Part shown: positions 1-59,212 of the stretch, in pieces
How the letters are laid out: each line of letters opens with the position of its first letter
How positions within the stretch are numbered: position 1 is the first letter of the stretch
Assembly: GCA_051294905.1 (NCBI GenBank)
Contig: CM119373.1
Span: forward strand, 33,914,001 to 33,978,000
Direction: 5' to 3'
From: Botryllus schlosseri
Lineage: Eukaryota
DNA length: 64,000 nucleotides
Translations under genes and position numbers: made by a program
The notes under the pieces: generated by a model
The model's database searches: none
Told to the model about the DNA's origin: nothing
What the model saw: the letters and a program-made list of their open reading frames with translations, nothing else

Positions 1-949
1 TGACATATAGGTAGCAGTCCATCACAACTATTGCATTAAATCGTGTCATACTATCTTCATAATTGAAATGCCGCTGCTCGGTCAAAGACTTTCTGTCCAT
101 GTCAAACCACATAAAACGTTTAACTTTTCCATTCGTCATTATAATGCCAGGAGTGCAGTCACCTTTGTAATCACTGGCTTCTACATCTGATCTCTCAGGT
201 AGCGACTTCATGATGTACATCATGCATTCGGTGGATTTGGCAACAGTTGGTTGCTGAGATAAAAATTTAAGATAGTAGACGGGGATTTTTTCCAGGTCGA
301 TGTGCTTCAGTAAATCAAAAACTTGATCGGCACGATCCAAGTCGTCATTAACCCAAATCATTGACGCTTTGCATTTAATAACATCCATCACATGCAAATC
401 TTCAGAGGAAATCAAATCCTCTAGGAAATCGAACTCAAGTTCCTTGAAATAGGATGTTTTCATGATCGAATGAAAGTGATCGCGAGCAAAACTTCTGCAT
501 GCTTCCTGTAATTGTTGACAGAAATACTTATCAGCAATATACCTGGTATCGAAAAAGGAATCGACGTCAAGATTTTTCTCCAGTAAAAGGGACATAGCAT
601 CGCATACTTTATCAATTCCAAACAAATGCGCCACATACATTAGTTCTTCCGTTTTTCGAATAGGAAAATACGCTTGTCCAGTGTACATGATTTCAATGCA
701 GGTCATCACACATTCAGGATCGACATGCTTTAAATCAACCTTTCCCAACATGTTTTCTTTTGTGTCGTGATTGAGCATCTTTGCAAAATACTCGGAACTT
801 GCGGCAATGACGCACTTGTGAACAAAGATTTCCTTTTCTCCCGCTTTGATAATGAAGTCGCAATACTGTTGATTGACTCTGAACTCATTAAATTTCGATA
901 GAAGGTCGAGGGCATGACCCGGCTTGCCAATATCCAGAAGATGTTCCAT
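1..949 (-). CDS. BTB-BACK-Kelch protein K1 (KLHL-like), 3' end runs off window
   Basis: ATG at 949; hand translation open to base 1 (MEHLLDIGKPGHALDLLSKFNEFRVNQQYCDFIIKAGEKEIFVHKCVIAASSEYF...YTG, BACK, start of propeller); paralog of K11/K6. Confidence 0.88.
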   Translation of the reverse strand, partial: MEHLLDIGKPGHALDLLSKFNEFRVNQQYCDFIIKAGEKEIFVHKCVIAASSEYFAKMLNHDTKENMLGKVDLKHVDPECVMTCIEIMYTGQAYFPIRKTEELMYVAHLFGIDKVCDAMSLLLEKNLDVDSFFDTRYIADKYFCQQLQEACRSFARDHFHSIMKTSYFKELEFDFLEDLISSEDLHVMDVIKCKASMIWVNDDLDRADQVFDLLKHIDLEKIPVYYLKFLSQQPTVAKSTECMMYIMKSLPERSDVEASDYKGDCTPGIIMTNGKVKRFMWFDMDRKSLTEQRHFNYEDSMTRFNAIVVMDCYLYV

Positions 950-2163
950 CACATTTGACCAGTTTATAGCCAAAATATATACCACACTCAAAAACTTTAG
1001 AATAATATCTGTAACTGTAACATCATACACACGGTGAGATTAGTTGTACTACATTGATGCAACGGTATCATCATATTCCTAACATAAGGATAGGAAAGAA
1101 AATGCAACCCCACATGTTAGTAAAGAGTGATATCCTTGGGCTCAGGTGACAGTAGATAGACTTAATCAAAAAATTTAATGGTACAGGGTCAAGCACGTAT
1201 CTGGGTCTCAACAAAATCTACAGAAAGCAACAAAACACAGACATGTACAATTGTACAGTGGACACAAAACAATGGCCGAAAAGTACGTACCAAGTAACAG
1301 CCTAGCACCTGGGAAATGAATGCCAAATCGCATCGCAAAAACTTTTTAGCGTACGTAACAAAAACGTACCATAAAATTGTAGTTTGTGATGCTGAACCAC
1401 AGTTTCAGGAGAACCAACTTATAGTACTTGAACAAGTTACATATTTTGAAAATCTTTCCAGCATCCACTAGCAGGTAGTGACGAACACAATTAAGTTCAG
1501 TTCATCAGGAATTTTCATCAACTCAAAACACCAGAAGACTGCGATACAATGAAAATATAGTGAGGTGTAGAAACGATTTGGAGTAGTCTTTGAAATCAGA
1601 CACCCACCTGGGACGGAGCAAAGTGAATGGAAGGCATGCACATGCACACTAAACGAAGAGCAAAAGAAGATAGTACAAAAAGACAAGAAACAAAATGAGG
1701 TGGCATGTGACGGAAGGCGAGATTGATATGTCACTTCATGGTCTGGTAGACTTGAGGACTGACTAGTGTTCAATCAGTAGAAATTGATTGTGTTTCGACT
1801 TGAATATGGACACGCTCTGGGAATGCCGGATAGCCGACGAGATGACGATTCGAATGCTCTAATCCAAACCATGTAACAAATGTTACGATCTGAGGTGAGA
1901 AGTGACAGATGATTATTTTCTGAGTACGGTACTAAGATCGAACGCCCCTTTCCATGAAAAGGTATATCGTCAACGAGAGTTTGACGCTTTTTTCTCAATG
2001 TGGAACCGTCAAAACCGAATTCACGGGATCCAAAACTCATAGCAGAGCTACGCAGGTTACTGTTGATTAAATTTCAGCAAAGTCATAATCAACCCACAGC
2101 AATATCACAAATTGAAATGAAATCCGCATGGTCACAAAATACCATATTATTTACCCCCTAGGC

Positions 2164-2557
2164 CAGTGGTTTTCAACTGGTGGGGAATTCGATGGTTGGT
2201 TTCTGGTGGGGTATAGACACATTTGTAAACCGTAATATACAGGATGGTCTACCACACATGCGCGATTACCGTTACCAGTTATCTAGTCTGGACTGTATGA
2301 ATCAAAACTCATAAATTGAAAGTGTCCTCGAAGGACGCCTAAATGACCTTCTAGTCAACACAATACTATCGGTTGACAATTTTCAAAATCACAAGCTTTC
2401 TTGAAGCTTTCAGAATTCATAACAAGAGTCCTCTTTTTGGGATCTCAAAATATGGTAACCTATTTCAAACGGTATATAGGAGTTTTGGGTAGCGGGGAAT
2501 AAAGACTCGGGATAAATCTGAAGTGGGAAATGAAGACAAAAGGGTTGGGAACTACTG
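2164..2557. mobile_element. Old hAT-type MITE in spacer
   Basis: Ends CAGTGGTTTTCAAC / GTTGGGAACTACTG; degenerate flanks ccctaggc/atccaggc; absent from paralogous spacers near 19520 and 53275. Confidence 0.55.
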
Positions 2558-3225
2558 ATCCAGGCCTATATGAGGTGTAAAAGTGACCTTACATTTTTTG
2601 TGGCTGCATTCAAGTTAGCCGACATATATTAACATAACCAAGGATTATAGTTCTATGATGCTATATTAAGTGATAGTTGAATAAACACCTGATTCTCCAT
2701 CTCCTAACTCAGGTACTCGTTTTTTTACAAGCCCTACTAACAAGCATAAAACAAACTTCAATAGTTTTTAAGCATGGGTATGATACGTGTACGCCTACAC
2801 GGACACAGACCAAGAAACACAGTCAGATAGCATGAAAATGCACAAGCAATAAACAGAGAATGATGGTATGAAAAAGCAATATAAATGCCGCTACATAGTT
2901 TAGTTGCTTGATAACAAAACTTGCTTATCGTGAAGATGTCAATGAATGCTGTGATACTACCTGCAACCAATAACTATAATTCAATAGCTTACTGTACTAG
3001 CTAGTTTCAAGATATCTCTCACAGTCTTATAGAACTTACAATTGAATTTGAAGAAAACGGTGACTGTACTAAGTTCAATAACTTGGAAGTTAAGTTCATC
3101 ATTACAATACCAATGTGGTGCTGGTAAAAGTAAAAATAGATGCAACACTGTAAATTTTATGGAATTACAAGTACAGTTAGCAATATCTAAGACATGTCAA
3201 AACTAAAACTGACTGATGACACAAG

Positions 3226-3680
3226 CAGGGTTGATATGACTCGAGTCGCGAATTTCCGTCGACTTGACTTGACCTTGCAATTTTCTGTATTGACTTGCAT
3301 AATTCCCACGACTTGTGACATTGTATATGGCTTGATTTAAGTCTCGTGATCATGGACGATGCCCAAAAATAAGCTCAGAACCAGTGTTTTTGTTTATTTG
3401 AAGGGACATAATGAGATTGATAAAAACTAGGGTGTTACGAGTTGGAGCCATCGAAATCACCAACGAACTTTAGAAATGTGACTTCAACGTGACTTGAACC
3501 CTATAATAAACAAGGAAGACTATGGCTTGGACTCGAGTCTCAAGACTGTGACTTGAAGTCGGCTAATTTTTCTTAGACTTGGACTAGGACTAGACCAGGT
3601 GGTGAGTGGTTAATGACTCGCTTTCACTCGAGTCAAAGCTAAAAAAATTAATACTTACTCGTGACTTGGCTGCAACCCTA
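3226..3680. mobile_element. hAT MITE (GACTCGAGTC-rich family), ancestral insertion copy 1
   Basis: CAGGGTTG...CAACCCTA ends; 8-bp TSD gacacaag/gacacaac. Confidence 0.75.
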
Positions 3681-4291
3681 GACACAACACAGAATAGTCT
3701 TTAAAAAAAGAATCCATCGATATATATTGTCGAATCCATGTGGTTTACATGACAATTTCACTCATAAATGTGGTAAAGCTTATTTCAAATTACTTTCAAT
3801 TTCTCAAAATCCAAATTGTGAAAAGTTATAATTTTTACCTAAGATTTGTTAAAGTAGAATGAGTCTGAAAAGGACGTGGGAAAGTAGCACACGTAACCTA
3901 AACCTAAGCCTTTAGTACACTACACAGTCCACACCAACTCAAAATATTCTACAACTGTAAAACAACGATGATACAGAACTCAGGGTGATTTGGTTTACGA
4001 CATGCAGACAACGCCTTACCTATAGTTAAAACCGTAATGTAAAACAATGATGGAATAAAAAATAGGAAATGTTGAGAAAACTAAGAGACTTTCATCCAGC
4101 AAAAGGCATGCAGGTTGGCATATTCTAAATGCCAAGTCAAGTAGATGACCAAAAATATTATCCAGCATATTTAATATAGACATGCATATAGATTCCCCAT
4201 GCATGCCACTTCACATGACATAAATGTCATGTAAGGCTTAATTCCGGTCAATTGAAGTGTAAATATAAGGTAATTCTTCCATACTCAAAAG

Positions 4292-5575
4292 TTACTTTGT
4301 GTCAAAATGGGCTCGCATGTGGTTCCTCAAACAGGAACTCCTGACGAATAACTTTCCGCATATTTCACACCCATAATCTTTTACGTTCAAATGGCTCTTC
4401 ATATGTTGCCTCAGAGAATGTTTTTGAACAAACGCTTGACCACACGTTTGACATTTGAAATCTTTTAGATCCAGATGGATACGCATATGCCGATTCAAAG
4501 AACATTTTTGGTTAAATGAAAGGTCGCATCTCCCACATTTAAAATCTTTCACGCCATAATGGATGAGCATGTGTCGCTGTAGGGATAGCTTTTGACTAAA
4601 ATATTTGCCACAGACTTCACACTCGAATTTCACAGCAAAATGGATGAGAGTGTGATTTTTTAAATACAGCAGTGTGGAGAACGATTTTCCACATGTCTCA
4701 CACTCATGTCTCTCATCGTTAGTGCGTGAATGGATGAGCAAGTGGTCAGCTAAACCTTCCCTTCGCTTGAACGATCTTCCGCATATTTCACACGAGAAAT
4801 TATTCACATCCAAATGGATCGCCATATGCTTTCGCAAACCATCTGTCCTCCTATGTATTGAGCCACATATGTCACACTTTAACTCTATACCATCAGTGTG
4901 CATCCTCGAATGATTTCTTAGAGACTGTTGATGCTGGAAAAGTTTACCGCATACTTGGCATTCAAAGCTTTTTACAGCAGAGTGGACGGACATATGTGAT
5001 TTCAAAGCTGTCTTTGAGCAGAGCAACATTGCGCAAATTTTGCACTCAACTTTTTTGATAGCGGATGCATTATGGACGATCTTTTTATGTTTTCTCAAAT
5101 CTTTCTTTGTGAAGAATGATCTTTCACAAATTTCACATTTGAAACTTTTCACGTCAAAATGGCGCAGCACGTGATTCTTCAAACCTCTCATTTCTTTTAG
5201 AACTTTGCCGCAAATTTCGCATGTAAAATTTTTTGTACTCGAATGGAACTGCATGTGCTTTTTGAGATCATCTCTTTGTCCGAAGGGCAAATGACATGTT
5301 CGACAGATCACAGTTTCCGTAGCAGAATGAAGCAGTAGGTGCTGACTCAAATTCCATTCAGAGGACAATGATTTGAAACAAATTTCACATTTGAAAGGCT
5401 TTACGCCAGCATGGGTCAGCAAGTGCTGACCTGAACTGGATTCATGCGCTAAGGATTTAAAATAAATTTCACATTTGAGAGGCTTCACCGCACGAGTGTG
5501 AATCAGCAAGTGAATTTTCAGATGACTCTTTGTGCTGTAAAATCGACCACAAACGTCACACTCGTGGTATGGCAT
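4292..5575 (-). CDS. Poly-C2H2 zinc-finger protein Z1 (15 fingers, F2 degenerate)
   Basis: ORF 4292..5638; first ATG (MPYHEC) at 5575; tandem Cx2C...Hx3H fingers, no effector domain visible. Confidence 0.9.
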   Translation of the reverse strand: MPYHECDVCGRFYSTKSHLKIHLLIHTRAVKPLKCEIYFKSLAHESSSGQHLLTHAGVKPFKCEICFKSLSSEWNLSQHLLLHSATETVICRTCHLPFGQRDDLKKHMQFHSSTKNFTCEICGKVLKEMRGLKNHVLRHFDVKSFKCEICERSFFTKKDLRKHKKIVHNASAIKKVECKICAMLLCSKTALKSHMSVHSAVKSFECQVCGKLFQHQQSLRNHSRMHTDGIELKCDICGSIHRRTDGLRKHMAIHLDVNNFSCEICGRSFKRREGLADHLLIHSRTNDERHECETCGKSFSTLLYLKNHTLIHFAVKFECEVCGKYFSQKLSLQRHMLIHYGVKDFKCGRCDLSFNQKCSLNRHMRIHLDLKDFKCQTCGQAFVQKHSLRQHMKSHLNVKDYGCEICGKLFVRSSCLRNHMRAHFDTK

Positions 5576-5822
5576 GGAATGGCGGAATGAATAAACAGGG
5601 TTCCTTGTGACCAGCTTCCGCGAGTAATAACTTGACACAAATTTAACAAAGCGTGTTCAACTGCGCTCTATGATGAACTTGCTGCGTGTCTTGTAACTAA
5701 AACTAGCCCAAATCGTCCCAATGCTCAAATCAGTCCGAGTTTGAAAATTCAAGGTAGTGATGAACGATGATAGAAGCAGAGCTGCCACAGAGGTATCAAT
5801 CTATAAATTTCAATGCATCAAT

Positions 5823-5920
5823 CTGAAAAAGTAAGCAGGACTATTATTAAATCAGTGTAAATATAGCTTGTGGGAACTGACTACAGCCATGATCAAATGA
5901 TGTTCATATTTACCGCTTAC
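5823..5920 (-). other. Putative 5'UTR intron of Z1 (98 bp)
   Basis: GTAAGC donor and CTTACTTTTTCAG acceptor; GT/AG kept at the same positions in five ZNF copies. Confidence 0.6.
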
Positions 5921-6027
5921 ATGCTGACACAACACAACAATATTTCTTTTTGAATTGACTGCTAAAAGAGCAGTGTGTCCGTCACATTTCTTTGAACTCG
6001 TCAAAAAATGATTAAAACACGTTAAGG

Positions 6028-6544
6028 CGGTGGTTCTCAACCTTTTAAACCCCAAGGCATGCTTTCGAAATGAAAAATAGTAGGGTACACACCAGCAAAC
6101 TACCAGAATACTTAGCAGCACCCACTGCAGTAGTAACATTGACTAATGTGCCAATCCAAAATGCTTCTGTATTAAAAGTTAAGAAGTTCTCACGAAAACA
6201 AAACAATTCGTTGAATTTCATCACAGAGAAAGTCAGCGCAAGATTCGTGCTTGACTTCTAGCGCATATCTTTTCAATGTGCGGGCACTCATAGAATAATG
6301 CAATTTTCATCTTTTCTTCACGATCACCACTAACGAATACGGAAGAGTGGGAGCGAAAGCAATTCAATGCATTTTCACGCAAATCGTTTAGCATGTGCGT
6401 GAGGACTGAGGATAACCATACCTCAATAGTACTACTGGGAGCAACCGGCAGTTCAATTCCACTGACAAGACATGATACTCTTATTACAATATTTGAAATT
6501 GTCAAGACAAATGCATAATGAACACATTCAATATATTTTATCAA
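6028..6544 (-). mobile_element. Buster-type hAT 3' end remnant with decayed transposase C-terminus
   Basis: TIR CGGTGGTTCTCAACC at 6028; ORF 6233..6544 ends ...MKIALFYECPHIEKICARSQARILR, resembling the hAT C-terminus ...RIALSTTKPRIAKLVVDMQAQPSH in this window. Confidence 0.5.
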
Positions 6545-6657
6545 GCCTAGATCATGGGACGACGTAAAATCTTAGTTTCTAGTTCCACTTTAACTGACAC
6601 CTCTTGAAAAACACAACTGCTTGTGCAGAAAGAATACTACAAAGACCTCATGCATCA

Positions 6658-8279
6658 TCACAAAATAATTCCTGCCGAATAGAGGTTGAGATCCAGAGAC
6701 TTCACGTCTTGCCAATCGAATTCTATCAACGTATTCAACAAATTCGTCTTGGGGTTGAATTCGAGGATACTCGTGCATGGTCTGTTAGAAAAGAATCCAC
6801 CGCATATGTATACCTTCCGCCAACACAATAAGTCACAAAATATGAACGTTGCAAATTGGGAAGTGGGATTTGCGTCCAAATATATGCATCATGGGGCAAC
6901 AAAAGAATGTTGCTTCCATACTGCGACTTGCCACTAAGACCACCAAGAACGTAAATGCTCTTATCCAAGGTGCATGCGACTGCACCAGTTCTCTTATCCG
7001 GTAAGGATGGCCCAATTGACCAAGTGGATGTCGAAAAGCTGAAACATTCCACATCTTGTATATAATTATTTAGTCCATTAGAGCCTCCAATTACATAAAG
7101 CTTATGCTGGGAAATAGTGAAGGCAGACGAAAGAGTTCTATATTGCTTGTTGGGGAGCTTCGACCAATGGTTATTATTTATGTCATATTGAGCCAAACAG
7201 CAGCTCGGATATTCATTTGCTACATAAAATTTACCCGATTTACAGGCAACTACACTGCTGTAATATGGAAATGAACGTTCAAGTTCTTTCCAGAGCGAAT
7301 CATTTTCGAGAAAATTACGATAGTACAGATCATATTTGAGATCAATAACATATATGTAGCATTCCATTACAACAACTGAGCCTGGTATAAAATTGAATGG
7401 CCGTAGCTCAGTGACCGACTTTCTGTCTATGTCAAACCACATGAGACGAGAAAGATCAACATTCACCATCAAAATACCAGGAGTACAGTCACCTTTGTAA
7501 TCACTGGCTTCTACATATGATTTCTCGGGCAGCGATTTCATGACGCACGTCATGCATTCGGTGGATTTGGCAACAGATCGTTGCTGAGATAAAAATTTAC
7601 GATATGAGATGGGTATTTTTTGCAGGTCAATATGCCGCAATAAGTCAAAAAGTTGATTGGATCGATCCAAGTTGTTGTTGAACCAAATCATCGCGGCTTT
7701 GCACTTGATCACATCCAACATCTTCAAATCTTCAGAGGAAATCAAATATTCCAGGAATTCGAAATCAACTTCCTTGAATTCGTCCATTTTCATGATCGCG
7801 TGAAAGTGTTCATGAGCAAAACTTCTGCATGCTTGCTGTAATCGTTGACAGGAATACTTATCGGCAATATTTCTGGTGTCGAAAAACGAGTCCACGTCAA
7901 GATTTTCATTCAGGAAAAGTGACATTGCATCGCATGCTTTATTAATTCCAAACAAATGTGCCACATACATTAGTTTTTCCGTTTTTTTAATCAGGAAGGA
8001 AGCTTGTCCAGTGTACATGATTTCAATGCAGGTCATCACACATTCAGTATCCACATTCTTTAAATCCACCATTCCCAACCTGTTCTCTTTTGTGTCGTGA
8101 TTGAGCATCTTTGCAAAATACTCGAAACTTGCGGCAATGACGCACTTGTGAACAAAAATTTCCTTTTCTCCCGCTTTGATAATGAAGTCGCAATACTGTT
8201 GATTGATTCTGAACTCGTCAAATTTCGACAGAAGGTCGAGGGCATGGCCCGTCTTGTCAATATTCAAAAGATGTTCCAT
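6658..8279 (-). pseudogene. BTB-BACK-Kelch K2, 1-bp deletion in last blade
   Basis: ORFs 6735..8282 and 6658..6879; taccttccgccaacac (~6817) vs taccttctctccaacac in intact paralog K5. Confidence 0.85.
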
Positions 8280-9150
8280 CACAGCTCACCAGTTTATATC
8301 CAAAATATATAGCTCACTAAAAAACTTTGGAATAAAACTGTAACTGTAACATCAGATACATGGTGAGTTTAGTTGTAACATATTTATGCAACGGTATCAT
8401 CATATTCCTAACATAAAGATAGGAAAGAAAATTTAATCCCACATGTTAGCGAAGAGTGATATCCTTGGGCTTAGGTGACAGAAGATGGAATACTAAGGAT
8501 CAAATTGAATATTATACGGTCAAGGACATTTTAGGGTCTTTAACATAATCTAAGAAGAAATACCTTCCTTATTCTACAGAAAGCAACAAAACACAGACAT
8601 CTACAGTGGACACAAATAGATGGAAGAAAAGTACCAACCAAGTAACAGCCAAACCGAATCACATCGGAAAAACTTTTTAGCGTACGTAACAAAATCGTAC
8701 TATAAAATTGCAGTTTGTGATGCTGAACCACAGTTTCAGGAGAACCTACTTATAGTACTAAACGAGTTACACAGTTTGAAATTTTTCTAGCATCCACTAA
8801 CAAGTAGTGTCGAGTACAATTTAGTTCAGTTCATTAAGAGTTTACTTCAATTCAAAACATCACAAGACTGCGATACAATGAACAAATAGCAAGGTGTCGA
8901 AACGATTAGAAGTAGGCTAGTCTTTGACACCAGACACCCACCCAGGCCCAAGCAAAGTAAATGGATGACATGCACACTGAACGAAGAGTAAAAGAACATA
9001 ATATAAAAAGACAACCGACAAAATAAGGTGGCATGTGACGGAAGGCGAGATCGATATGTCAGGTCATGATCTGGTACACCTGAGGGCTGACTAGTGCTCA
9101 TGCTCATTCAGTAGAAATTGATTATACTTAACTTGAATATCGATACACTT

Positions 9151-9654
9151 GGAGCTTTGGAGCCGGAGCAAGGAGCCGGAGCCGTGCATTTTCACCGGAG
9201 CTCAACATGAAATCGTGTGACAATTAAACACTCGAAGCGTGAAAAAAATTTCACTACTATTTTAGTTCATTGTAATGTACGAAGCTTTACTAGAAATGTG
9301 ACTGGACCCTGGATCTGCCAATGCGTCGGAACTGATATTTTAGTCATCAACATCCAAAGTGTCCCAGCCAGACTTGTTATTTTTGGTTGGCCTTGCAAGT
9401 TCATAATCTGAGCAATTCATTTTTGATAATATCACAGGATTCCGATAATAAAATAGGAAATTATCTCGTGGGCCACTCAAAACCCTCTCGCATGACACAT
9501 TTGGCCCGCTGGCCGCGGGTTGGCCACCGCTGATATAGACAAACCCATTCGATAATTTTCAGAGCCGGAGCCGGAGCTGGGGCTAATGTATGAGGAAAGA
9601 AAGCTCTGGAGCCGGAGCTGGAGCAGTTAAAATTTACGCTGCTCCAAAGCCCTG
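9151..9654. mobile_element. hAT-type MITE with GGAGCC repeats, left end lost
   Basis: Right TIR GCTCCAAAGCCCTG; left side begins ggagctttggagccggagc; contains a nested GTTGGCCACCGCTG end near 9520-9535. Confidence 0.6.
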
Positions 9655-10102
9655 CATGTAGGTCTACATGGAACATAAAGCGAGAAATACAGAAATATAG
9701 TATGAAAATGCACAAGAAACAAACGGAAAGATGGTACGAAAATGGTCAAGCAATGTAAATTGATGAGCACATGAAGCTACGGAGATTTTTTGCCTTGATA
9801 ACAAAACTTGCTTATCGTGAAGATTAGAATGAATATTGTGATCCTACGTGCATCTTGTATCTGTATTTCGACAGCTTTGCATACAACTTAGCTAAAAGAT
9901 ATCTCTAGCAGTTTTACAGATCTTACAATTGACTTTAAAGAAAATGGTTGATGAACTTAATTTTAATAACATTGAAGTTTGTGTTCATCCTTTCACTACC
10001 GATGTGGTGAAAGTGGAAATACCCCAGTATATTTTGCTGAATTACAAATAGAAGTAGCAATATCTATGACATGTCAAAACAAAAAATGCCTGACGACAAA
10101 AC

Positions 10103-16936: not shown

Positions 16937-16992
16937 CTAGCAATATTTAAAATCATAAATATAAAAATGTGATTCATGATTAATTTGTGGCG

Positions 16993-47640: not shown

Positions 47641-47785
47641 TGGGTGGACATTGGACACGTCCTTCAGGTATCATTGTGCATAATGTGCATGTGCATTGTG
47701 CAACAATGTCTGCGCTTGGGGGTAGATTTTCAATCACAGGAAAGTGACAAGTAGCTAATACATCATTCAAGTTGATGCCTGTGCT

Positions 47786-49684
47786 TTACCCGATTCCTTT
47801 AACGGATATGGGCACAAATTTAGGCTGGCGGGGAAGGATGGCAGCGGTATTCATTAAATAAGTCAGCGGTTCACCACTGATAACCAATTGGTTTAGGAAA
47901 AAGAAAGTACACAGGCAGTTGGTAGCCCCAGTGATAAGGAATGCACATGTAATAAAACCGGTAGAAGCTACCAGACAGGTGATTATCACAAAAGGTGTAG
48001 ACAGATGTGTCACCAGACAACTTATCTCGGCAATTGCAGGAGATAGAGCCGTAACCGTGTTGTTCTCAGCAACAACAATCGATTTAGGATATAACGAACA
48101 TTTGTATGCGTCATGTAATAAAGTGCTTTGAGCACAGCCACATCCATGAATTTTCCAATGACATGTGGATGGGTAATAATTGGGATCATGATCACAGAAT
48201 AAGCAATTACGGCGTAACAGACTCTCTTCTGCGGATCCATGACGCTGCTGAACTTGCATCTTTTGGATGTCTTCAAAGTTGAAGAGAGGATGAAGATCTT
48301 GACACAGGATACATGATGAACGTAGCTCCTTTTCAGCGACATATCGATGCATCGAGCTTGAATCCATAGATGTAGTATTCACCTCTATTGCAGTTTTGCG
48401 CGGATTCTTTGAGTACTTCTTGTGCGGTACGCTTAGATCAACATCTTTGGGTTCAAGTGAACAATAAAATTCATTGTTGACCGGACCAAATGGTGACCGA
48501 GTCAATGCTGTTTTCTTCTTGACAAATTCAACGAAATCGTTGGAATTTGGATTAACACTGGCTTCATCCTGGTGACTTCGAGGGAATGAAGGTGTAACAG
48601 GGTATTGAGCAGAATGTAGCAACTCACTATTGTTAGTGGTAACAGTTGCAGAGTTCGTAGAACTATCAATGGACATTTCACAAGTGTGAAAGCCTCGATT
48701 AAATTTGGTCGCATCAGCCGGCCCATTACGGGTGGCCGAGTAGTGAATATCAGAGGAAATTTTTTGTGGCACAGCTGGCCCATTATAGGCTTCTGAGTAA
48801 CGGAAACTGAATGGCGAATCTTGTTGCACAGCCGGCCCATTACAGGGGACTGAGAATCGGTAACATGATGAAATAACTGGTTTCACAGCCGACCCATTAC
48901 AGGGGGCTGAGAATTGGAAATTTGATGTCTTGTCTGACAACGAACATTCTTCAACGCAAGTAGGGCAAGTTGCGAAAGTTTGACATTGCGTGGGAATGGC
49001 CAGAGTATTGAGAAAGTCTTCTGTGAGTGGTTTATCATTATTAGCATTGCCAACTGGCAGTCCTTTGTTGAGAGTGTCATTACTATCCAAGCCGCAGCAA
49101 CCTTTATGACTGGTCACAGAAGCTAATGATCCAAATTGTGACGAAACAATTGCTTTATACCGTTCAAGTTTTGACTGAGCACTGAAAAGTTTCCATTCCA
49201 ACCTTTTCAAATTGTCTTTCTCATGCGTCCACAATGTCTGTAAGTCGTCAAGTGACGTACTTACACTTTCAGAAGTAATAAGTTTACGGAATTTGCCATC
49301 AGCAATATTCTTTGTATATAGACACAGGTCATGAAATGACGAAATACTGTCCAATATTGATTGGGCATCGACACTGCCCTCGGTTATCTTGTCTTTGATA
49401 CCGGTAGTAAGATTGTTCAACTGGGTATTGACTCGATGAAATGTCTCGTCAAGACTGTCTTTTGCAGCCAGAACAGTTCGGGGAGTAGCTCCACTCAAAC
49501 ATTTAGTAAAGTAGGCATCGGCAGCGTGGAAGTCCCTTGCTAGACCGGCCAAAATATTGTCAGTGACTTGCATATCGAAGCCTCTGACTGTAATCGCCTT
49601 ATAGGCATTAGGGTCTCTTCTTGGACCAAAAGTAATAAGATTGACTTGCGTATCGAAGTCTTTTACTGTAGATGGAGGATCCAT
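47786..49684 (-). CDS. gag: BEL/Pao Gag-like protein
   Basis: ORF 47786..49705, first ATG 49684; CILCQDLH...CLFC...C...CGCAQSTLLH knuckle cluster typical of BEL/Pao. Confidence 0.78.
   Translation of the reverse strand: MDPPSTVKDFDTQVNLITFGPRRDPNAYKAITVRGFDMQVTDNILAGLARDFHAADAYFTKCLSGATPRTVLAAKDSLDETFHRVNTQLNNLTTGIKDKITEGSVDAQSILDSISSFHDLCLYTKNIADGKFRKLITSESVSTSLDDLQTLWTHEKDNLKRLEWKLFSAQSKLERYKAIVSSQFGSLASVTSHKGCCGLDSNDTLNKGLPVGNANNDKPLTEDFLNTLAIPTQCQTFATCPTCVEECSLSDKTSNFQFSAPCNGSAVKPVISSCYRFSVPCNGPAVQQDSPFSFRYSEAYNGPAVPQKISSDIHYSATRNGPADATKFNRGFHTCEMSIDSSTNSATVTTNNSELLHSAQYPVTPSFPRSHQDEASVNPNSNDFVEFVKKKTALTRSPFGPVNNEFYCSLEPKDVDLSVPHKKYSKNPRKTAIEVNTTSMDSSSMHRYVAEKELRSSCILCQDLHPLFNFEDIQKMQVQQRHGSAEESLLRRNCLFCDHDPNYYPSTCHWKIHGCGCAQSTLLHDAYKCSLYPKSIVVAENNTVTALSPAIAEISCLVTHLSTPFVIITCLVASTGFITCAFLITGATNCLCTFFFLNQLVISGEPLTYLMNTAAILPRQPKFVPISVKGIG
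48715..48930 (-). repeat. 4 x 57-bp (19-aa) tandem repeat inside gag
   Basis: CAGCCGGCCCATTA-like units at 48715, 48772, 48829, 48886 (SAPCNGSAV, SVPCNGPAV, SEAYNGPAV, SATRNGPAD). Confidence 0.85.
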
Positions 49685-49721
49685 AACGAAGTTAATGGAA
49701 TACACTCAATTTTTCAACCTT

Positions 49722-50028
49722 TGTCGTCTCCAAGTAGAGACTTATGAAGAATGTGATTGGAGTAGGCTGACTCTGGATCTCCTCTCTCAACTGGTACGAA
49801 ACAAGAACTCCAAATGGACGAATATCTTATTAAAATACCGTTGAAAAATTGCTGGTAATATCCTGGTAAGACCAAATACTCCAGTAAATAAACAATAAAT
49901 GAACAGACCAACAACAACAAAACAAAGCTGGCTACATTCACCACGTCGCCCACGAAATGAGTGCACGTGCGCTCCAAAGCAGTCCAAGTGGTGAGTGAGC
50001 CATAGAGAAAATAATATCCACCGTGACA
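49722..50028 (-). repeat. 5' LTR (307 bp)
   Basis: Direct repeat of 46670..46976. Confidence 0.93.
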
Positions 50029-51353
50029 GGTTGTATGATATGCATCAAAACCACCAATTACATGAAGTTTATCCTGAGATATAGTGTAGGCAGACAAACA
50101 CAATCTGGATTGCTTGTTGGGAAGCTTCGACCACTTGTTATTGATTGTGTCATATTGGGCCAAAGACTCAAGATATGAAAAATATAATATACCGGGCTTA
50201 CGTGCAACTACAGTGTTGTATCCAAGAAATGCAGGTTCAAGTTTTCTCCAGGGTGAATCATTTTCAAGAAAATTACGACAGTACAAATCCCACTTTTCAT
50301 CAACGACATATATGTAGCAGTCCATCACAACTACCACGAGAAATGGCCTCAAACTAACTTCAGCATTGAAATGTCGCTGCTCTGTCAAAGACTCTCTGTC
50401 CATGTCAAACCACATAAGACGAGAAACATCCTCATTCACTATTATAATATTCGGAGTACAGTCACCTTTGTAATCACTGGCTTCTACATCTGACTTCTCC
50501 GGTAGTGACTTCACGATGTGCATCATGCATTCGGTGGATTTAGCAACAGTTGGTTGCTGAGATAAAAATTTACGATAGTAGACAGGGATTTTCTCCAGGT
50601 CGATATACTTCAGTAATTCAAAAAGTTGATCAGCGCGATCCAGATCCTCATTCACCCAAATCAATGACGCTTTGCACTTAATAACATCCAACACATGCAA
50701 ATCTTCAGAGGATATCAAATGCTCGAGGAAATCGAACTCAAGTTCCTTGAAATCAGCAGTTTTCATGATCGAATGAAAGTGATCACGAGCAAAACTTCTG
50801 CATGCTTGCTGTAATTGTTGACAGGAATATTTATCGGCAATACTTCTGGTGTCGAAAAACGAGTCCACGTCAAGATTTTGATCCAAGAAAAGCGACATTG
50901 CATCGCATACCTTATTAATTCCAAACAAATGCGCCACATACATTAGTTTTTCCGTTTTTCTAATCAGAAAAGACGCTTGTCCCCGGTACATGATTTCAAT
51001 GCAGGTCATCACACATTCAGGATCTACTTGCTTTAAATCAACCATTCCCAACATGTTCTCTTTTGTGTCGTGATTGAGCATCTTAGCAAAATACTCAGAA
51101 CTTGCGGCAATGACGCACTTGTGAACAGAGATCTCCTTTTCTCCCACTTTTATAATGAAGTCGCAATACTCTGTTGATTGATTCTGAACTCATCAAATTT
51201 CGATAGAAGGTCGAGGGCATGGCCCGACTTGCCAATATCCAGAAGATGTTCCATCACAGTTGACTAGTTTATAGCCAAAATATATACCTCACTCGAAAAC
51301 TTTAGAATAATATCCGTAGCCTAACTGTAACATCATACACAAGGTGAGATTAG

Positions 51354-52262: not shown

Positions 52263-53943
52263 GAGATTAGTTGTACTTTCGGTATCATCATATTCGGAAG
52301 AAAATGGAATCCCACATGTCATCGATGAATATTATAGGGCAAAGCACATTTTTGGGTCTCAACAAAATCTGAGAAGAAATCCCTACTTTATTCTACAGAA
52401 AGCCAATAAAACACAGACATGTACAGTGGACACAAAAAGATGGCAAAAAGGTACCCACATAGTAACAGGCAAGCCAAATCGTATGGGAAAAACTTTTTAC
52501 AGTAAGTAACAAAAACGTACTATAAAATTGTAGTTTGTGATGCTGAACTAGAGTGTCAGGAGAACCGACTTATAGTACTTGAACGAGTTACACATTTTGA
52601 AAATCTTTCCAGCATCCACTAACAAGTAGTGCCAAGCACAATTTTGTTCAGTTCATCAAGAATTTTCATCAATTCAAAACACCACAAGACTGCGATGCAA
52701 TGAAAAAGAGGAATGTCTCGATACGATTTGGTGTAGTCTTTGAAATCAGACACCTACCCAGGCCTAGGCAAAGTAAAGGGAAGGCATGCACACTGAACGA
52801 AGAGCAAAAGAAGATAATACAAAAAGACGAGCGAAAAAATGAGGTGGCATGTGACGGAATGCGAGATCAATATGTCAGGTCATGGTCTGGAACACATGAA
52901 GGCTGACTAGTATTCATTCAGTAGAAATTGATTGTATTTCGACTTGAATATGGACACACTCGAGGAATGTTGGATTGCAGACTTGATGATTCAAGTGCTC
53001 TAATCCAAACCCTGTAAAAAATGTTATGATCCGAGTCGAGAAGTGGCAGACGATTAATTTTCGAGTACTGAGATCATACATCGTTTTGCATTAAAGAATA
53101 TATCATTAACGACATTTAGAGTGACGATGCTATTTTCTCAACGTAGAAGCGTCAAAACCGGATTCGCAGCACCTAAAACTCATAGCACAGAGCCACGCAG
53201 GTTGCTGGTGATTAAATTTCCGCCAAGTCATGATTAACCCACAGCATTGTCACAAAGTGAAAAAACACTAAATTATCTATATGAGGTGTAAAACTGCCCT
53301 TATTTTTGTGGCTGCATTATAGGTAGCCTACATGAACATTACCGATGATTATAGTTCTATGATGAAATATTAGGTGATACTTGAATATACACCTGGTGCG
53401 CAATCTATTAACTCAGGTACCAAGCCCTACTAACAAGCGTAGAACAAACTTCAAAATTTTTAAGCATGGGTATGATACATGTAGGCCTTCATGGAACATA
53501 GAGCGAGAAATATAGAAATGTAGTATGAAAATACACAAGAAACAGACAGAAAGATAGTATGAAAATGGGCATGTAATGAAAATTGATGAGCACATGACGC
53601 TACACAGTTGGCTTGCTTGATAATAAAACTTGCTTATCGTGAAGATTTAAATGAATACTGTGATCCTACATGAATCTGTTATCTTTATTTCGACAGATTT
53701 CCATATACCTCAGCCAAAAGATATCTCTTGCAGTTTTACAGATCTTGCAATTGAATTTAAAGAAAATGGTTCATGTACCAATACTTAATGTTAATAACTG
53801 TGAAGTTTATACTCATCGTTTCACTACCGATGTGGTGAAAGTAGAAATGGAATTACCGCTGTATATTTTGCTGAATTACAAATAGAAGTAGCAATATCCA
53901 TTATCCTAGACATGTCAAAACAAAAAATGACTGATGACACAAC

Positions 53944-54393
53944 CAGGGTCGTGATGAATCGAGTCGCAAATTTCCGTTAACTGGACTTGACTCTTGAGTC
54001 ATTTTATGTATAGACTCGACTTTTACTACAGTCATTGTGAATGACTCGAACAAGTTATAAGACAAGAGACTTTATATTTGAATTGATTCAAATCTCGTGT
54101 AACAGGAACGATACCAGAAAAATAAGCCAAGATCAATTGCTTCGTACGTTTCATTAGACGTGTTAAGACTTGATAAAAATGAGTTTCTTTTGAATTGGGG
54201 CCTTCGATATCACCGAGGAGCTTCTAAAAAGGTGAGTTGAACCGGATTGAACTCTATAGACTATGACTCTACTCGACCATAATTTCTTTGATCTGGACTA
54301 AGACTTGACCCGGTGGCGAGTTTTAAATGACTCGACTTCACTCGAGTAAAATCTCTAAAAGTAATATTGACTTGTGACTTGGCTACAACCCTA
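53944..54393. mobile_element. hAT MITE, ancestral insertion copy 5
   Basis: Perfect TSD gacacaac/gacacaac. Confidence 0.78.
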
Positions 54394-55540
54394 GACACAA
54401 CACAGAGGAATTTTTAAAAATAGAATCCGTTGATATACAGTCGATTCCATGTGGTTATTATGACAATTTCACTCACAAATGTGGTGCAACTGTAAAACTA
54501 CGACAATACATAACTCACGGTGATCTGGTTTACGACATGAAGACAATGCCTTATCGGCATGGTCGAAAAAGAACATATTATCAATATGTACTGTTAAACT
54601 GCCCGTATGTTCTTAGTGGCTGAATTTGAGGTGCATATATCAACATTATCATGGTCATAGTTCTATGATGCAATATTAAGTGTTACTCGAATACACACAT
54701 TGGATTCGCAATCTATTACTCAGGTACTTGATTTTCCCAAGCTACACTAACAATCATAGAACGGATTTCAAATTTTTTAAGCATCAGTATAATACATGTA
54801 GGCATACATGGAACAAAAAGCGAGAAATACAGAAAGATAGTATGAAAATGCACAAGCAATATAAATTGACAGGCACATGTCGCTACAGAAATGACTTGAA
54901 CAATGACAAAACTGTCAATCCTAAATCAGCTGATAAAGACTAGGGGAAGATTGAGAACTGTGGTATAAAAAACAGCCTTGATGAAGGCCGGTATCGCGAA
55001 TAAGACGTTGCCAGCATTTATCAACTGACGTCATACTTGGTGAAACGATTGTTGATATACAATGTTATTTCCAATTCTCTACTAGTTGCTGAAGATTATC
55101 CCTGACGAGTGTCAGGCGTAAATATTCGGGTTCATTTCGATATGAATATACCATTTAATTGTATATTGAAGTTTTGTACCTCCAAGAAGCTCTTAAAAAC
55201 TGTTAAACTACGAAAATAACGAATTCACGGTGATCTGGTTTACGACATGAAGAAAATGCCTTACCTATAATACAGACCATAAGGCAAAACAATAAAGGAA
55301 CAAAATACAGAAATGTCGAGAATGTTAAGAGACATCCATCCTGTAAATTGCATGCAAGTTTGCACATTCCAAATGCGAAGTCAAGTATATGACCTGAAAA
55401 TATCATCCATAATATTTAATTCAGAAAAGCATGCAGATTCCCCATGACATGCCAATTCACACGACAATGAACGTCATGTAAGGTTTAATTCAGGTATATC
55501 GAAGTGTTAATAAAATAAAGTAATCGTTACATACTCAAAG

Positions 55541-56646
55541 TTACTTCATGTCAAAATGGACCTGCATGTGGTTCCTCAAACAAGAACTCCTGACAAATAA
55601 CCTGCCGCAGATTTCACACCCAAAATCTTTCACGTCCAAATGGCTCTTGATATGTTGCCTCAGAGAATGTTTTTGAACAAACGCTTGACCACACGTTTCG
55701 CACTTGAAATCTTTCATATTCAGATGGATACTCATATGCCTATTCAGAGAACACTTTTGGTTAATGAAATGTCGCATCGCTCGCATTTAAAAGCTTTCAC
55801 GTCATAATGGATGAGCATGTGTCGCCGTAGGGATTGCTTTTGACTAAAACGTTTGCCACAGATTTCACACTTGAATTTCACATCAAAATGGATGAGAGTG
55901 TGTTTTTCCAGATACAGCAGGGTGGTGAACGATTTTCCACATGTCTCACACTCATGTCTCTCATCTTTAGTATGCGAATGGATGAGTATGTGGCGCGCTA
56001 AATCCGGTCCTCGCTTGAAAGATATGCCGCATATTTCACACGAGAAATTGTTCACATCCAAATGGATCGCCATATGTCTTTCCAAACTACTCTCAATGCT
56101 ATATGATGAGCCACATATTTCACATTTGAACTCTATACCATCAGTGTGCATCCTCGAATGACTTCTCAGACAATCTTTCTGTCGAAAAAGTTTACCGCAT
56201 ACTTGGCATTCAAAGCTTTTGGCAGAGTGGATGAGCATATGTGATTCCAAAGTCGTCTTTGAGCAGACTAATTTAGCGCAAATTTCGCACTTGTATTATT
56301 TGATACTGGTAACGGTATGGACGTTCCTATGATTTCTCAAATCTTTCTTTGTGAAGAATGATCTTTCACAAATTTCACATTTGAAACCTTTCATGTCAAA
56401 ATGGCGCAGCACGTGATTCTTCAAACCTCTCATTTCTTTCAGAATTTTGCCGCAAATTTCGCACGTGAAATTTTTAGTGCTGGAATGGAACTGTATGTGC
56501 TTTTTCAGATCATCTCTTTGTCCGAAGGGCAGAGCACAAGTTCGACAGGTCACAGTTTCTGCAGCAGTATGGAGCAGTAGGTGATGAGTCAAATTCCATT
56601 TAGAGGACAATGATTTGAAACAAAGGCCACATTGGAAAGGCTTCAT
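55541..56646 (-). pseudogene. Poly-C2H2 ZNF Z7, nonsense codon plus frameshift
   Basis: AAA->TAA at 56296-98; 1-bp deletion at ~55765; close paralog of Z2; ATG (MKPFQC) at 56646. Confidence 0.87.
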
Positions 56647-57063
56647 GCCAGCATATATCCGTGAGTGTTCACTTGAACAGGATTTACTGGAAGAGGGTTT
56701 AAAACAAAATTCACATTTGAAAAGGCTCTCAGTACAAGTGTGAGTCAGCAAGTGCTTTTCCAAATCACTTTTTGTGCTGTAGAATCGACCGTAAACGTCA
56801 CAATTCGTGGTATGGTGTGGCGGAATGAATATACAGTGTTCCTCGTGACCCGCTTTCTAGAGGAATGACTTGCCACAAATTTGACAAAGCGTCTTTATCT
56901 GTGTGCTCCCTACGGACTTGCTGCGTGTCCTGTACCTAAAACTACCGCCAATTGTTCCAATTCATAAGTCAGTCAGAGTTTGAAAATTCGAGGTATTGAC
57001 GAACGACTATGGAAGCAGAGCTGCAGCAGAGATATGCCAATCTATTAATCTTTACGCCTCAAT

Positions 57064-57161
57064 CTGCAAAAGTAAGCATATCTGTTATTAAAATTGTGTA
57101 AATTTTGTTTGTGGAAACCGATTGCAGCAGTGATCAAATGATATTTATATTCAGGGCTGAC
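57064..57161 (-). other. Putative 5'UTR intron of Z7 (98 bp)
   Basis: GTCAGC...CTTACTTTTGCAG. Confidence 0.55.
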
Positions 57162-57559
57162 ATAACACAGTGTTATTCCAATTAGAATTGACTGCAAAAG
57201 TGCAGTGTGACAGTCGCGTTTTTCCAGCTCGTCAAAAAATGGTCGAAACACATCAAGGGGTGCCAAGAAGTTCACAAATCTCGAAGTTTTCTCTGTAACG
57301 TCAGTAACATTTTGATTGGCTCACGTGAGCTCAACACTACAAAATTGAGGGAAATTGGAAAGGAAGGAACACGAAGTCTGAATCAGCTGGGCTTACAGAT
57401 AGTGAGAAAGCGTCATTAACACAGTTTTATAAAACAACGGGTAACGGACAAAAAACTAAAGAAAAGATCCATGCTTTCTCGCAAGATGTATAAAACCAAA
57501 CGCAAGATGTGTGCAAAATCACTAATTTTAAAAATTTGATCCGTTAACGTTTTGTGGCA

Positions 57560-59212
57560 TCACAAGATGATTGCCGAAGCATGGATTCTATTATTCAGAT
57601 ATTCCGGGTCATCACTATGGAAGTCTATCAACGTACTCAACAAATTAGTTTTCGGATTGAACTCGAGGATATCATCGCAGAGCATTTCATCATTGTATCC
57701 ACCACATATGTATATCTTTCCGAGAATACAATGAGTTTTGAAATCCATTCGCTTCAATCCGGGTTTTTGAACTGGAATTATCGTCCACATACTTTCAGCA
57801 CTGGATAGCCAAAGAATGTCGGTTGCACACATACTGTCCACAGTTTTTCCGCCAAGAAGGTAGATGTCCTTATTCAATGTACATGCACTTGCATCAGTTC
57901 TCACAACTGGCAATGATGGTCCATGTGACCAAGTGGATGCTGAAAAGTTGAAACATTCCACATCCAGCACAAATTTAGATGAATATACATCAAAACCACC
58001 AATTGCGTAAATCTTATCCTTAGCTATTGTGTAGGCAGACGCATCCACAATGGATTGCTTGTTAGGAAGCTTCGACCACTTGTTATTGATTGTGTCATAT
58101 TGGACCAAAAAAGACTCCACCCATTTATGACCTGCTAAATAAAATTTCCCTGATTTACGTGCCACTACTTCACCGTATCGGTATTCTCGTAATGGACGTT
58201 CAAGTTTTATCCAGGGTGAATCATATTCAAGAAAATTACGACGGTAGAAATCAGAATTGGTAGCAATGACATATATGTAGCAGTCCATCACAACTATTGC
58301 GCTAAATCGTGTCACACTATCTTTATAATTGACATGCCGCTGCTCGGTCAAAGACTTTCTGTCCATGTCAAACCACATAAAACGTCCTTGTCCATTCGTC
58401 ATTATAATGCCCGGAGTGCAGTCACCTTTGTAATCACTCGCTTCTACATCTGATCTCTCAGGTAGTGACTTCATGATGTACATCATGCATTCGGTGGATT
58501 TGCCAACAGTTGGGTGCTGAGATAAAAATTTACGATAGTAGACGGGTATTTTTTCCATGTCGATGTGCTTCAGTAAATCAAAAAGTTGATCGGCGCGATC
58601 CAAGTCCTCATTAACCCAAATCATTGACGCTTTGCATTTAATAACATCCAATACATGCAAATCTTCAGAGGAAATCAAATCCTCCAGGAGATCGAACTCA
58701 AGTTCCTTGAAATAGGATGTTTTCATGATCGAATGAAAGTGATCGCGAGCAAAACTTCGGCATGCTTGCTGTAACTGCTGACAGAAATACTTCTCAGCAA
58801 TATACCTGGTATCGAAAAACGAGTCTATGTCCAGATTTTCCTTCAGGTAAAGTGACATTGCATCGCATACTTTATCAATTCCAAACAAATGCGCCACATA
58901 CATTAGTTTTTCCGTATTTCGAATCAGAAACAAGGCTTGTCCAGTGTACATGATTTCAATACACGTCATCACACATTCAGGATCGACATGCTTTAAATCA
59001 ACCTTTCCCAACATGTTTTCTTTTGTGTCGTGATTGAGCATCTTTGCAAAATACTCGGAACTTGCGGCAATGACGCACTTGTGAACAAAGATTTCTTTTT
59101 CTCCCGCTTTGATAATGAAGTCGCAATACTGTTGATTGACTCTGAACTCATTAAATTTCGATAGAAGGTCGAGGGCATGACCCGGCTTGCCAATATCCAG
59201 AAGATGTTCCAT
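57560..59212 (-). CDS. BTB-BACK-Kelch protein K11
   Basis: Intact ORF 57560..59293 (GTG); family ATG at 59212. Confidence 0.92.
   Translation of the reverse strand: MEHLLDIGKPGHALDLLSKFNEFRVNQQYCDFIIKAGEKEIFVHKCVIAASSEYFAKMLNHDTKENMLGKVDLKHVDPECVMTCIEIMYTGQALFLIRNTEKLMYVAHLFGIDKVCDAMSLYLKENLDIDSFFDTRYIAEKYFCQQLQQACRSFARDHFHSIMKTSYFKELEFDLLEDLISSEDLHVLDVIKCKASMIWVNEDLDRADQLFDLLKHIDMEKIPVYYRKFLSQHPTVGKSTECMMYIMKSLPERSDVEASDYKGDCTPGIIMTNGQGRFMWFDMDRKSLTEQRHVNYKDSVTRFSAIVVMDCYIYVIATNSDFYRRNFLEYDSPWIKLERPLREYRYGEVVARKSGKFYLAGHKWVESFLVQYDTINNKWSKLPNKQSIVDASAYTIAKDKIYAIGGFDVYSSKFVLDVECFNFSASTWSHGPSLPVVRTDASACTLNKDIYLLGGKTVDSMCATDILWLSSAESMWTIIPVQKPGLKRMDFKTHCILGKIYICGGYNDEMLCDDILEFNPKTNLLSTLIDFHSDDPEYLNNRIHASAIIL

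Follow-up and report, generated by a model that had tools for sequence, protein, structure and literature searches.

The interleaving of BTB-BACK-Kelch genes (K) with poly-C2H2 zinc-finger genes (Z) in a 64,000-nt stretch of the Botryllus schlosseri genome (contig CM119373.1, positions 33,914,001 to 33,978,000; the window) raises the question of whether the neighbours work together or were copied together. A sequence-only reading of the window had proposed a two-component system, in the form of a split effector, an adaptor and its substrate, or a toxin-antidote-like pair, with the caveat that the pairing could reflect co-duplication. The anatomy of the locus, its block duplications and its selection patterns are demonstrated in this analysis. 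The window probably lies at the heart of a tandem array that is specific to this lineage and evolves by birth and death, that is, by copying, divergence and decay, and such a cluster is of the ordinary kind. Functional coupling of K and Z is not supported.

With intact copies as tblastn queries, 11 K and 7 Z loci were found in the window, all 18 on the minus strand and each with an intronless coding sequence in a single unbroken block, in agreement with the sequence-only reading. The window belongs to a tandem array that spans about 280 kb of the chromosome (C3:33.80-34.08 Mb) and was sampled beyond the window as alternate 10-kb pieces. The whole array, a single locus, contains at least 35 K matches and at least 22 Z matches, on the minus strand throughout, and the Z family (>50% identity) has no other genomic site.

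The loci are listed here by window position, followed by the tblastn extent where it was recorded. K1 (1-1030; 2-1030) is the 5' part of a gene truncated by the window start, and the complete gene is intact in the genome (C3:33913300-33915030, a 580-aa open frame). It is followed by the intact type-A Z1 (4292-5575; 4295-5632), whose Met immediately precedes finger 1, and by the type-A K2 (6658-8279; 6661-8333) with a frameshift in the final Kelch blade. The type-B1 Z2 (11728-13017; 11737-13014) is missing its start codon and finger 1 and has a stop at codon 48, leaving a residual ORF of 370 aa from an internal Met. Next are the intact type-B K3 (13755-15407; 13758-15413), the divergent, intact K4 (16993-18639; 16996-18720), whose next gene is K3 with no Z, the type-A Z3 (21209-22491; 21212-22524), frameshifted by a 1-nt deletion, and the intact type-A K5 (23545-25167; 23548-25221). 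The intact type-B2 Z4 (29656-30933; 29659-30984) has 15 fingers, and the type-B K6 (34124-35774; 34124-35855) is frameshifted. Z5 (37791-39005; 37794-39005) is intact and represents an old divergent lineage, with dS of 1.3-2.0 against other Z copies. K7 (39600-40009) is a BTB-only fragment and K8 (41946-43595; 41949-43631) is intact. At a deletion junction (44117-44767), a Z6 fragment (44117-44514) abuts a K9 fragment (44392-44767). K10 (46248-51317; 46251-46670 and 50032-51317) is split by a 3.35-kb LTR element, whose LTRs (46670-46969; 49722-50021) enclose a 639-aa ORF at 47786-49705. The type-B1 Z7 (55544-56937) is disrupted by a stop (codon 174) and by a deletion of one nucleotide, and the intact type-B K11 (57560-59212; 57563-59293) is the copy used for the structure model.

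The distance from a K stop to the following Z start is 737 bp for K3-Z2, 736 bp for K11-Z7, 1053 bp for K5-Z3 and 1082 bp for K2-Z1, so that insert-free adjacent gaps span 0.74-1.08 kb, close to the 0.75-1.1 kb read earlier from the sequence; the K6-Z4 gap measures 3.1 kb because of an insert. With some 484 K-like and 1156 ZNF-like candidates across 495 Mb, chance alone would give about 1.1 same-strand K-Z adjacencies at a distance of up to 2 kb. The arrangement is non-random, yet it is as expected from segmental duplication. Adjacency is also not obligate. Another K, rather than a Z, comes next at three junctions inside the array (K4-K3, K8-K7 and K10-K9), Z-Z junctions without an upstream K occur at the array edge (Z copies at 34074121 and 34081041), and a solo intact K on C14:21322223 retains the K flank with Z absent. 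Obligate K-Z linkage is rejected on these grounds.

The spacer resolves into a K-specific 3' flank of about 260 bp (minus strand, 13497-13760), present after nearly all K including the solo C14 copy, joined to a Z-specific 5' flank of about 450-600 bp (minus strand, 12850-13452), present before all Z including those lacking a K. In B-type copies the Z 5' flank carries CCAAT-like and TATAAATA motifs. Since each gene has its own conserved flank, which also occurs without the other gene, the most likely arrangement is that K and Z are transcribed as separate units.

Duplicated blocks of about 5.9-6.6 kb share 88-92% identity, equally in coding and non-coding DNA. The type-A block with Z1 and K2 (2566-9157) is 88% identical to 19525-26059 (Z3 and K5), and the type-B block with Z2 and K3 (9655-15506) is 92% identical to 53478-59298 (Z7 and K11). 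These matches bear out the type-specific pairing that had been described and also the caveat on co-duplication. The blocks are contained in a 14.5-kb higher-order repeat [K_B Z_B K_A Z_A], in which type-B K copies are spaced 14,458 and 14,352 bp and type-A K copies 14,550 and 14,797 bp apart. The DNA 3' of Z is array-specific, and its copies in the closest units are 86-94% identical. Type-matched pairing follows from the duplication of blocks as wholes and is a by-product of amplification. The K and Z trees agree incompletely, the d_L007/zE pair being discordant. Counting against this reading, all Z and nearly all K lie in one array together with old lineages of both (dS up to 2 for Z and up to 0.66 for K), and they are thus long-standing neighbours. 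An ancestral pair, an intronless K followed by Z, would have been amplified repeatedly by unequal crossing-over, with entire 6-7 kb blocks as the copied units at first and the 14.5-kb [K_B Z_B K_A Z_A] unit later.

Judging from their coding sequences, K and Z are real genes under selection. The earlier domain calls were borne out by Pfam, which assigned BTB, BACK and Kelch domains to K but C2H2 families alone to Z. An N-terminal BTB/POZ domain (PF00651, E 4e-20 to 6e-21 in K11, K4 and K8) is followed by BACK (PF07707, E 5e-13 to 2e-12), helical at residues 132-249 of the K11 model, and by Kelch_1 and Kelch_6 matches; Pfam and the model alignment support a six-blade C-terminal Kelch beta-propeller. 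The K11 model (mean pLDDT 82) matched the CUL3 adaptors KLHL22 and KBTBD2 at full length (E 1e-26), and its Kelch part aligned with KLHL12, KEAP1 and KLHL3 over about 300 columns (TM 0.80-0.83, about 0.82 for KLHL12 and KEAP1; rmsd about 2.9 A). A conserved HDTKEN segment occupies what we take to be the position of the phi-x-E loop, with E kept and Thr at the phi position; this loop, residues 63-67 of K11, was modelled with low pLDDT. Values of dN/dS were 0.11-0.31 in BTB-BACK and 0.29-1.0 in Kelch, with values near 1 confined to the closest copies, and Kelch exceeded BTB 3-4 times in per-site entropy. K would accordingly be described as a BTB-BACK-Kelch protein with a predicted CUL3-substrate-adaptor fold, a constrained dimerisation and cullin-binding half and a fast-changing six-blade propeller, and we infer a role in bringing a changing set of targets to ubiquitination. 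The domain order is common to KLHL/KBTBD adaptors such as KLHL22, KBTBD2, KLHL12 and KEAP1, although the identity of K to solved members is just 12-18%, and to any large-database protein it does not exceed 23%. Unlike those adaptors, K, a predicted CUL3 adaptor, is intronless, arranged in tandem and hypervariable in its propeller.

Z is predicted to be a bare 15-finger C2H2 protein. Z4 contains 15 C-x2-C-x12-H-x3-5-H units (zf-C2H2, E 1e-65), and Pfam matches in Z4 and Z5 were to zinc-finger families only, with no KRAB, SCAN, ZAD or BTB. A Met lies directly 5' of finger 1, and the reading frame upstream is not kept between Z types. Among the intact copies compared, dN/dS was about 0.2-0.5 overall; at DNA-contact residues it reached 0.7-1.9 in closer copies, against 0.18-0.40 at other finger positions, and the excess was significant in three of the six pairs tested (Fisher p 0.0001-0.012). 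Conservation extends over the scaffold and over fingers 4-5 and 12-15, whereas the contact residues of fingers 1-3 and 8-11 diversify; those of fingers 12-15 are unchanging even in the oldest lineages. This pattern suggests that Z binds DNA with a specificity that is being retuned. Broken B1-type copies showed dN/dS of 0.34-0.72, not 1, and some of them may be recently dead or functional from an internal Met. For recent paralogues, positive selection on DNA-binding specificity has been reported (Emerson and Thomas 2009, PMC2604467). Z resembles mammalian KRAB-ZNF clusters in having expanded locally in tandem, with copies both gained and lost, and in its conserved finger scaffold with raised dN/dS at contact residues. 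In contrast to them, the Z protein begins at the first finger with no effector domain of the four kinds named above, its linkers are of the usual length with a sequence other than TGEKP, and the contact residues of its four C-terminal fingers are fixed.

Placement of K and Z on a single transcript, either operon-like or by read-through, or by alternative splicing of the K BTB to the Z fingers, is very unlikely. It would account for the co-orientation, for a spacer fixed at 0.74 or 1.05-1.08 kb, for the fact that six of the seven spacers checked lack a canonical AATAAA/ATTAAA polyadenylation hexamer, and for a conserved branch point with a TTTGCAG acceptor-like site 5' of Z. RNA coverage of about 1x in one run (X13) also extends from the K3 3' end across the spacer into Z2, and sea squirts are known for SL trans-splicing and operons (PMC1488885). 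The spacing of 737-1082 bp, however, differs from that of tunicate SL-resolved operons, in which neighbours are likewise co-oriented but intercistronic DNA is absent in most Ciona operons and 23-30 nt long in Oikopleura (PMC1488885). Z copies lacking K keep a 5' flank with CCAAT-like and TATA-like motifs, and K copies lacking Z keep the 3' flank. A genome search with the Ciona SL sequence and splice donor yielded just one match, with 1 mismatch. K3 and Z2 were nearly silent in two bulk RNA runs, and at coverage of about 1x or zero the reads contained no K-Z joints and no leader-like loose ends at Z2. The idea of a split effector derives from ZBTB factors, in which BTB and C2H2 fingers co-occur; here BTB belongs to a BACK-Kelch protein and lies in a separate ORF with separate flanks from the fingers, and RNA reads at this coverage held no fused BTB-finger transcript.

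Wherever they lie in the array, K and Z might interact in trans. A functional module of this type, with Z as substrates of K-CUL3 (regulator-degrader) or as guides of K-CUL3 to chromatin (a split BTB-ZF-like effector), and with the families staying linked because selection keeps the linkage, is unlikely. It draws on the exclusive co-residence of both families in one array and one orientation, on the conserved scaffold that each pairs with a diversifying recognition surface, on the lack of an effector domain in Z and on the invariant C-terminal fingers 12-15 as a possible common docking surface. A bolder version, in which bare ZNFs and hypervariable Kelch CUL3 adaptors form a co-evolving recognition system that works in trans, either as a ubiquitin ligase guided by ZNFs or to degrade ZNFs that have gone rogue, with linkage kept since recombination of matched types is harmful, is decidedly improbable. 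Against such a module, as against the two-component system of the sequence-only reading, stand the separate gene-specific flanks in the spacer, the solo C14 K, the Z copies without K, the K-K junctions, the incompletely congruent trees and the lack of any ZNF in the sampled pieces of the distant K paralogue clusters on C14 and C12. Across 16 units, both partners were intact in 2-4, only K in 4-6, only Z in 5 and neither in 3. The intactness of K and Z was not associated in these units (odds ratio 0.2-0.6, Fisher p 0.31-1.0), and joint retention of intact partners was rejected. K is under purifying selection beside dead Z, and the converse also occurs. Loss of either gene is independent of loss of its partner, and we infer that the two are not mutually dependent. 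A further possibility, that the array consists mostly of neutral debris, or that the assembly has inflated it by placing haplotype copies as tandem repeats, with most ORFs being recently dead pseudogenes devoid of function, is extremely unlikely. In its favour, broken loci make up about half of the total, K3 and Z2 gave hardly any RNA, and some copies are 96% identical, which is near the allelic divergence of 2.4-3.9% derived from 31-mer shares of 0.29-0.47 in other individuals. Most blocks, however, diverge by 6-12%, which exceeds the allelic level, and TE insertions are private to each copy. Of the 15 near-full-length K copies within the pieces read, 10 retain intact 1.6-kb ORFs, with the low BTB-BACK dN/dS given above, and intact Z copies are likewise constrained.

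Read as a birth-and-death array, the locus is a clear case of block duplication yielding type-matched pairs that resemble a designed system, and it cautions against inferring function from adjacency. Two features are noteworthy in their own right, a lineage-specific CUL3-adaptor-like family with a fast-changing propeller and an adjoining zinc-finger family with diversifying DNA-contact residues, and both patterns are typical of conflict-driven families facing pathogens, transposons or non-self. If an interaction of K with Z were true, it would be a new way of coupling DNA recognition to ubiquitination. A lineage-specific expansion of CUL3 adaptors has been described for MATH-BTB genes in grasses (PMC4091423). 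K is similarly an expanded family of the CUL3-adaptor type, but its substrate-binding domain is Kelch and its array is interleaved with a second family. K conserves its BTB half and varies in its substrate-binding half.

Analysis of the six-frame ORF list and tblastn with intact copies identified 11 BTB-BACK-Kelch loci (K1 to K11) and seven poly-C2H2 zinc-finger loci (Z1 to Z7) in the window; every locus lies on the minus strand with its CDS in one unbroken block, and both approaches agreed with the intron-free inventory of the sequence-only reading. BTB, BACK, and Kelch were assigned to K by Pfam, which found zinc-finger families alone in Z and no KRAB, SCAN, ZAD, or BTB, as that reading had held. 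The gap of about 0.75 to 1.1 kb that it gave from K stop to Z start was also accurate, with 736 to 1082 bp measured at the four uninserted junctions (K11 to Z7, 736 bp; K3 to Z2, 737 bp; K5 to Z3, 1053 bp; K2 to Z1, 1082 bp). The 3.1-kb gap between K6 and Z4 is due to an insert, K7 and K9/Z6 are remnants of deletion, and the next gene after K4, K8, and K10 is another K, not a Z. In genome searches the array extended outside the window over C3:33.80-34.08 Mb, where K matches numbered at least 35 and Z matches at least 22, on the minus strand only; the outside DNA was read as alternate 10-kb pieces, half of the remainder.

The interleaving of K and Z is accounted for by block duplication. Self-alignment revealed long blocks in which coding and non-coding DNA were alike in similarity, namely, 2566-9157 versus 19525-26059 (Z1+K2 and Z3+K5, type A, 88%), 9655-15506 versus 53478-59298 (Z2+K3 and Z7+K11, type B, 92%), 9663-13303 versus 27577-31215 (89%), and 13496-15506 versus 33853-35860 (90.5%). 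The period was 14,458 and 14,352 bp for type-B K and 14,550 and 14,797 bp for type-A K, corresponding to a 14.5-kb higher-order repeat of the order K_B Z_B K_A Z_A. Save for two short dispersed repeats, the 2-kb stretch that follows Z was array-specific, and the closest units were 86 to 94% identical there. The even similarity of the blocks, the higher-order repeat, and the repeated DNA downstream of Z together mark the K-Z pairing as a footprint of block duplication, which bears out the earlier caveat that type-specific pairing could reflect co-duplication. The K and Z trees, whose comparison had been proposed, were congruent for most pairs and discordant for d_L007 and zE, a K and a Z copy of the array outside the window. 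Synonymous divergence between recent K copies was far higher in BTB-BACK than in Kelch, with a dS of 0.189 versus 0.036 for K3 and K11 (13755-15407 versus 57560-59212), and this unevenness suggests mosaic copies formed via gene conversion or intragenic recombination. Some array copies were near the allelic divergence of 2.4 to 3.9%, and an assembly artefact could thus account for some of the copies counted.

The K-Z spacer is a K flank joined to a Z flank. About 260 bp 3' of the K stop were present after nearly every K, including K-K junctions and a solo copy (C14:21323951-21324098), and about 450 to 600 bp 5' of Z, in which B-type copies have CCAAT-like and TATAAATA motifs, were present before every Z, including Z4-type copies distant from K. 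The same Z flank (34075247 and 34082171) preceded the pair of Z copies at the edge of the array, neither of which has a K upstream. As the K flank was seen without Z and the Z flank without K, each gene has its own flanks. The solo K at C14:21322223 was intact (587 aa, 69% identity), with no Z-family match nearby in the downstream DNA as judged by search coordinates. No zinc-finger gene was found in the 10-kb pieces read from distant K clusters on C14 and C12 (33 to 36% identity). The claim that K-Z linkage was kept through birth-and-death turnover is not borne out by the intact solo K, the K-less Z at the array edge, and the K-K junctions. Two K fragments were located on C17 (C17:2233243, L014 8246-9091; C17:2303472, L015 8475-9320); these are copies of an internal 840-bp stretch (aa 90-370), 70 kb apart, with the same match statistics and 91% identity to K10; they lack K sequence on either side and resemble captured or transduced pieces. 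The K7 fragment was ruled out as an ancient partner of Z5, since the same fragment adjoins a B-type Z in the outside piece L002.

A functional K-Z pair, envisaged as a split effector, adaptor and substrate, or toxin and antidote, was weighed against the fate of the partners. K and Z decay independently: across 16 units their intactness gave an odds ratio of 0.2 to 0.6 (P = 0.31 to 1.0). Copies of the B1-type Z (the Z2/Z7 kind) have in common that the start codon and finger 1 are gone; private lesions followed in Z7 (one stop and a 1-nt deletion) and in the outside copies zC (an insertion of 393 bp) and zG (two stops), and their K partners (K3, K11, and the outside copies c and h) were intact and under purifying selection. 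The B2-type Z (Z4 and the outside copy zF) were intact beside a dead K. A strict pattern of one partner always dead, hinted at by the window, was ruled out, since inheritance explains part of the B1 lesions and an ORF of 370 aa survives in Z2. Broken B1 copies had a dN/dS of 0.34 to 0.72, not 1, and some died recently or may function from an internal Met. Chance alone would give about 1.1 same-strand K-Z adjacencies (within 2 kb) from the roughly 484 K-like and 1156 ZNF-like candidate loci in 495 Mb; one ancestral neighbour pair is therefore unremarkable and a chance origin is plausible. We consider it very improbable that K and Z interact in trans.

Co-transcription of K and Z may occur but is not favoured. 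None of the indexed runs recorded as RNA contained these genes. Over 11001-17000, alignment covered two sets of contigs together with the raw bulk RNA runs X13 and X17; X13 covered 12.4 to 14.0 kb at about 1x, from the 5' half of Z2 across the spacer to the 3' end of K3, X17 gave zero cover over K3/Z2, and at this cover of about 1x or zero on the two genes no K-Z joints were found. AATAAA and ATTAAA were absent from six of the seven spacers checked, and the Ciona leader pattern had a single match with one mismatch. Spacers of 737 to 1082 bp are unlike those of the known sea squirt operons, in which intercistronic DNA is scant or absent (PMC1488885). Deep RNA or contig spots at 11201-11400, 15801-16000, and 16401-17000 were short high-copy dispersed repeats, on which reads pile up very deep and continue into unlike sequence; similarly, the opening 255 bp of 9400-11700 (9400-9655) match many chromosomes at about 82%.

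Tandem birth-and-death arrays of either BTB-Kelch or poly-ZF genes are well known, and literature searches turned up no description of a K-Z array like this one. Within the BTB-BACK-Kelch kind, K represents a new and lineage-specific member, its closest protein in a large protein database sharing 23% identity. The AlphaFold model of K11 (mean pLDDT 82) matched full-length KLHL22 and KBTBD2 from CUL3 complexes (E 1e-26), and its propeller matched the six-blade Kelch domains of KLHL12, KEAP1, and KLHL3 (TM 0.80 to 0.83). Among readable near-full-length copies, 10 of 15 were intact. By pairwise Nei-Gojobori counts, not site models, as also used for Z, dN/dS was 0.11 to 0.31 in BTB-BACK and 0.29 to 1.0 in the linker and Kelch, approaching 1 solely in the closest copies, and per-site entropy climbed three- to fourfold from BTB to Kelch. 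This genome shows a massive expansion of BTB-Kelch genes; C1:6.5-8.1 Mb and 14.0-15.7 Mb hold dozens more intronless K-like loci (about 25% identity), many with one TGA in frame at about the same position, and C1 is also abundant in ZNF matches. PF05978 was found at a single locus, on C5, which does not confirm an array of K with UNC-93.

Z, a tandem poly-ZF family, lacks an effector domain; the frame upstream of the Met differs between types, and this lack of conservation indicates a protein of fingers only (15 in Z4). The overall dN/dS was about 0.2 to 0.5, with 0.7 to 1.9 at helix positions -1, 2, 3, and 6 in closer copies versus 0.18 to 0.40 in the remaining finger positions, and the surplus of non-synonymous change at contact sites was significant in three of the six pairs tested. 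Contact residues were nearly fixed in fingers 4-5 and 12-15, including in the old Z5 lineage (dS 1.3 to 2.0), and variable in fingers 1-3 and 8-11. Such a pattern has been described for recent poly-ZF paralogues (PMC2604467). The insertion in zC (L006 1497-3290, C3:33896533-33898203) translates to a poly-Lys (poly-A) run and resembles a SINE or retroposed fragment.

The Kelch domain of K10 is split by a 3.35-kb element (46670-50021) with 300-bp direct terminal repeats 99% identical (46670-46969 and 49722-50021) and a single 639-aa ORF (47786-49705) without a Pfam match. Relatives are scattered on many chromosomes, some within ORFs of about 2,069 aa, and the element looks like a young non-autonomous LTR retroelement. 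Just beyond the array, a 384-aa ORF on the plus strand (61985-63139) had no significant match in a Pfam scan, and protein-language-model features pointed to ZBED5/FAM200/GTF2IRD2-like (DUF4371) hAT-derived proteins (score 0.97). Of the 31-mer words in the stretch from Z5 to K8 (37700-43700), a fraction of 0.39 was present in a 2025 run carrying another organism code (X26, organism B), a share equal to that of other organism A individuals; the code may denote a very close relative or a synonym, or the sample may be mixed.
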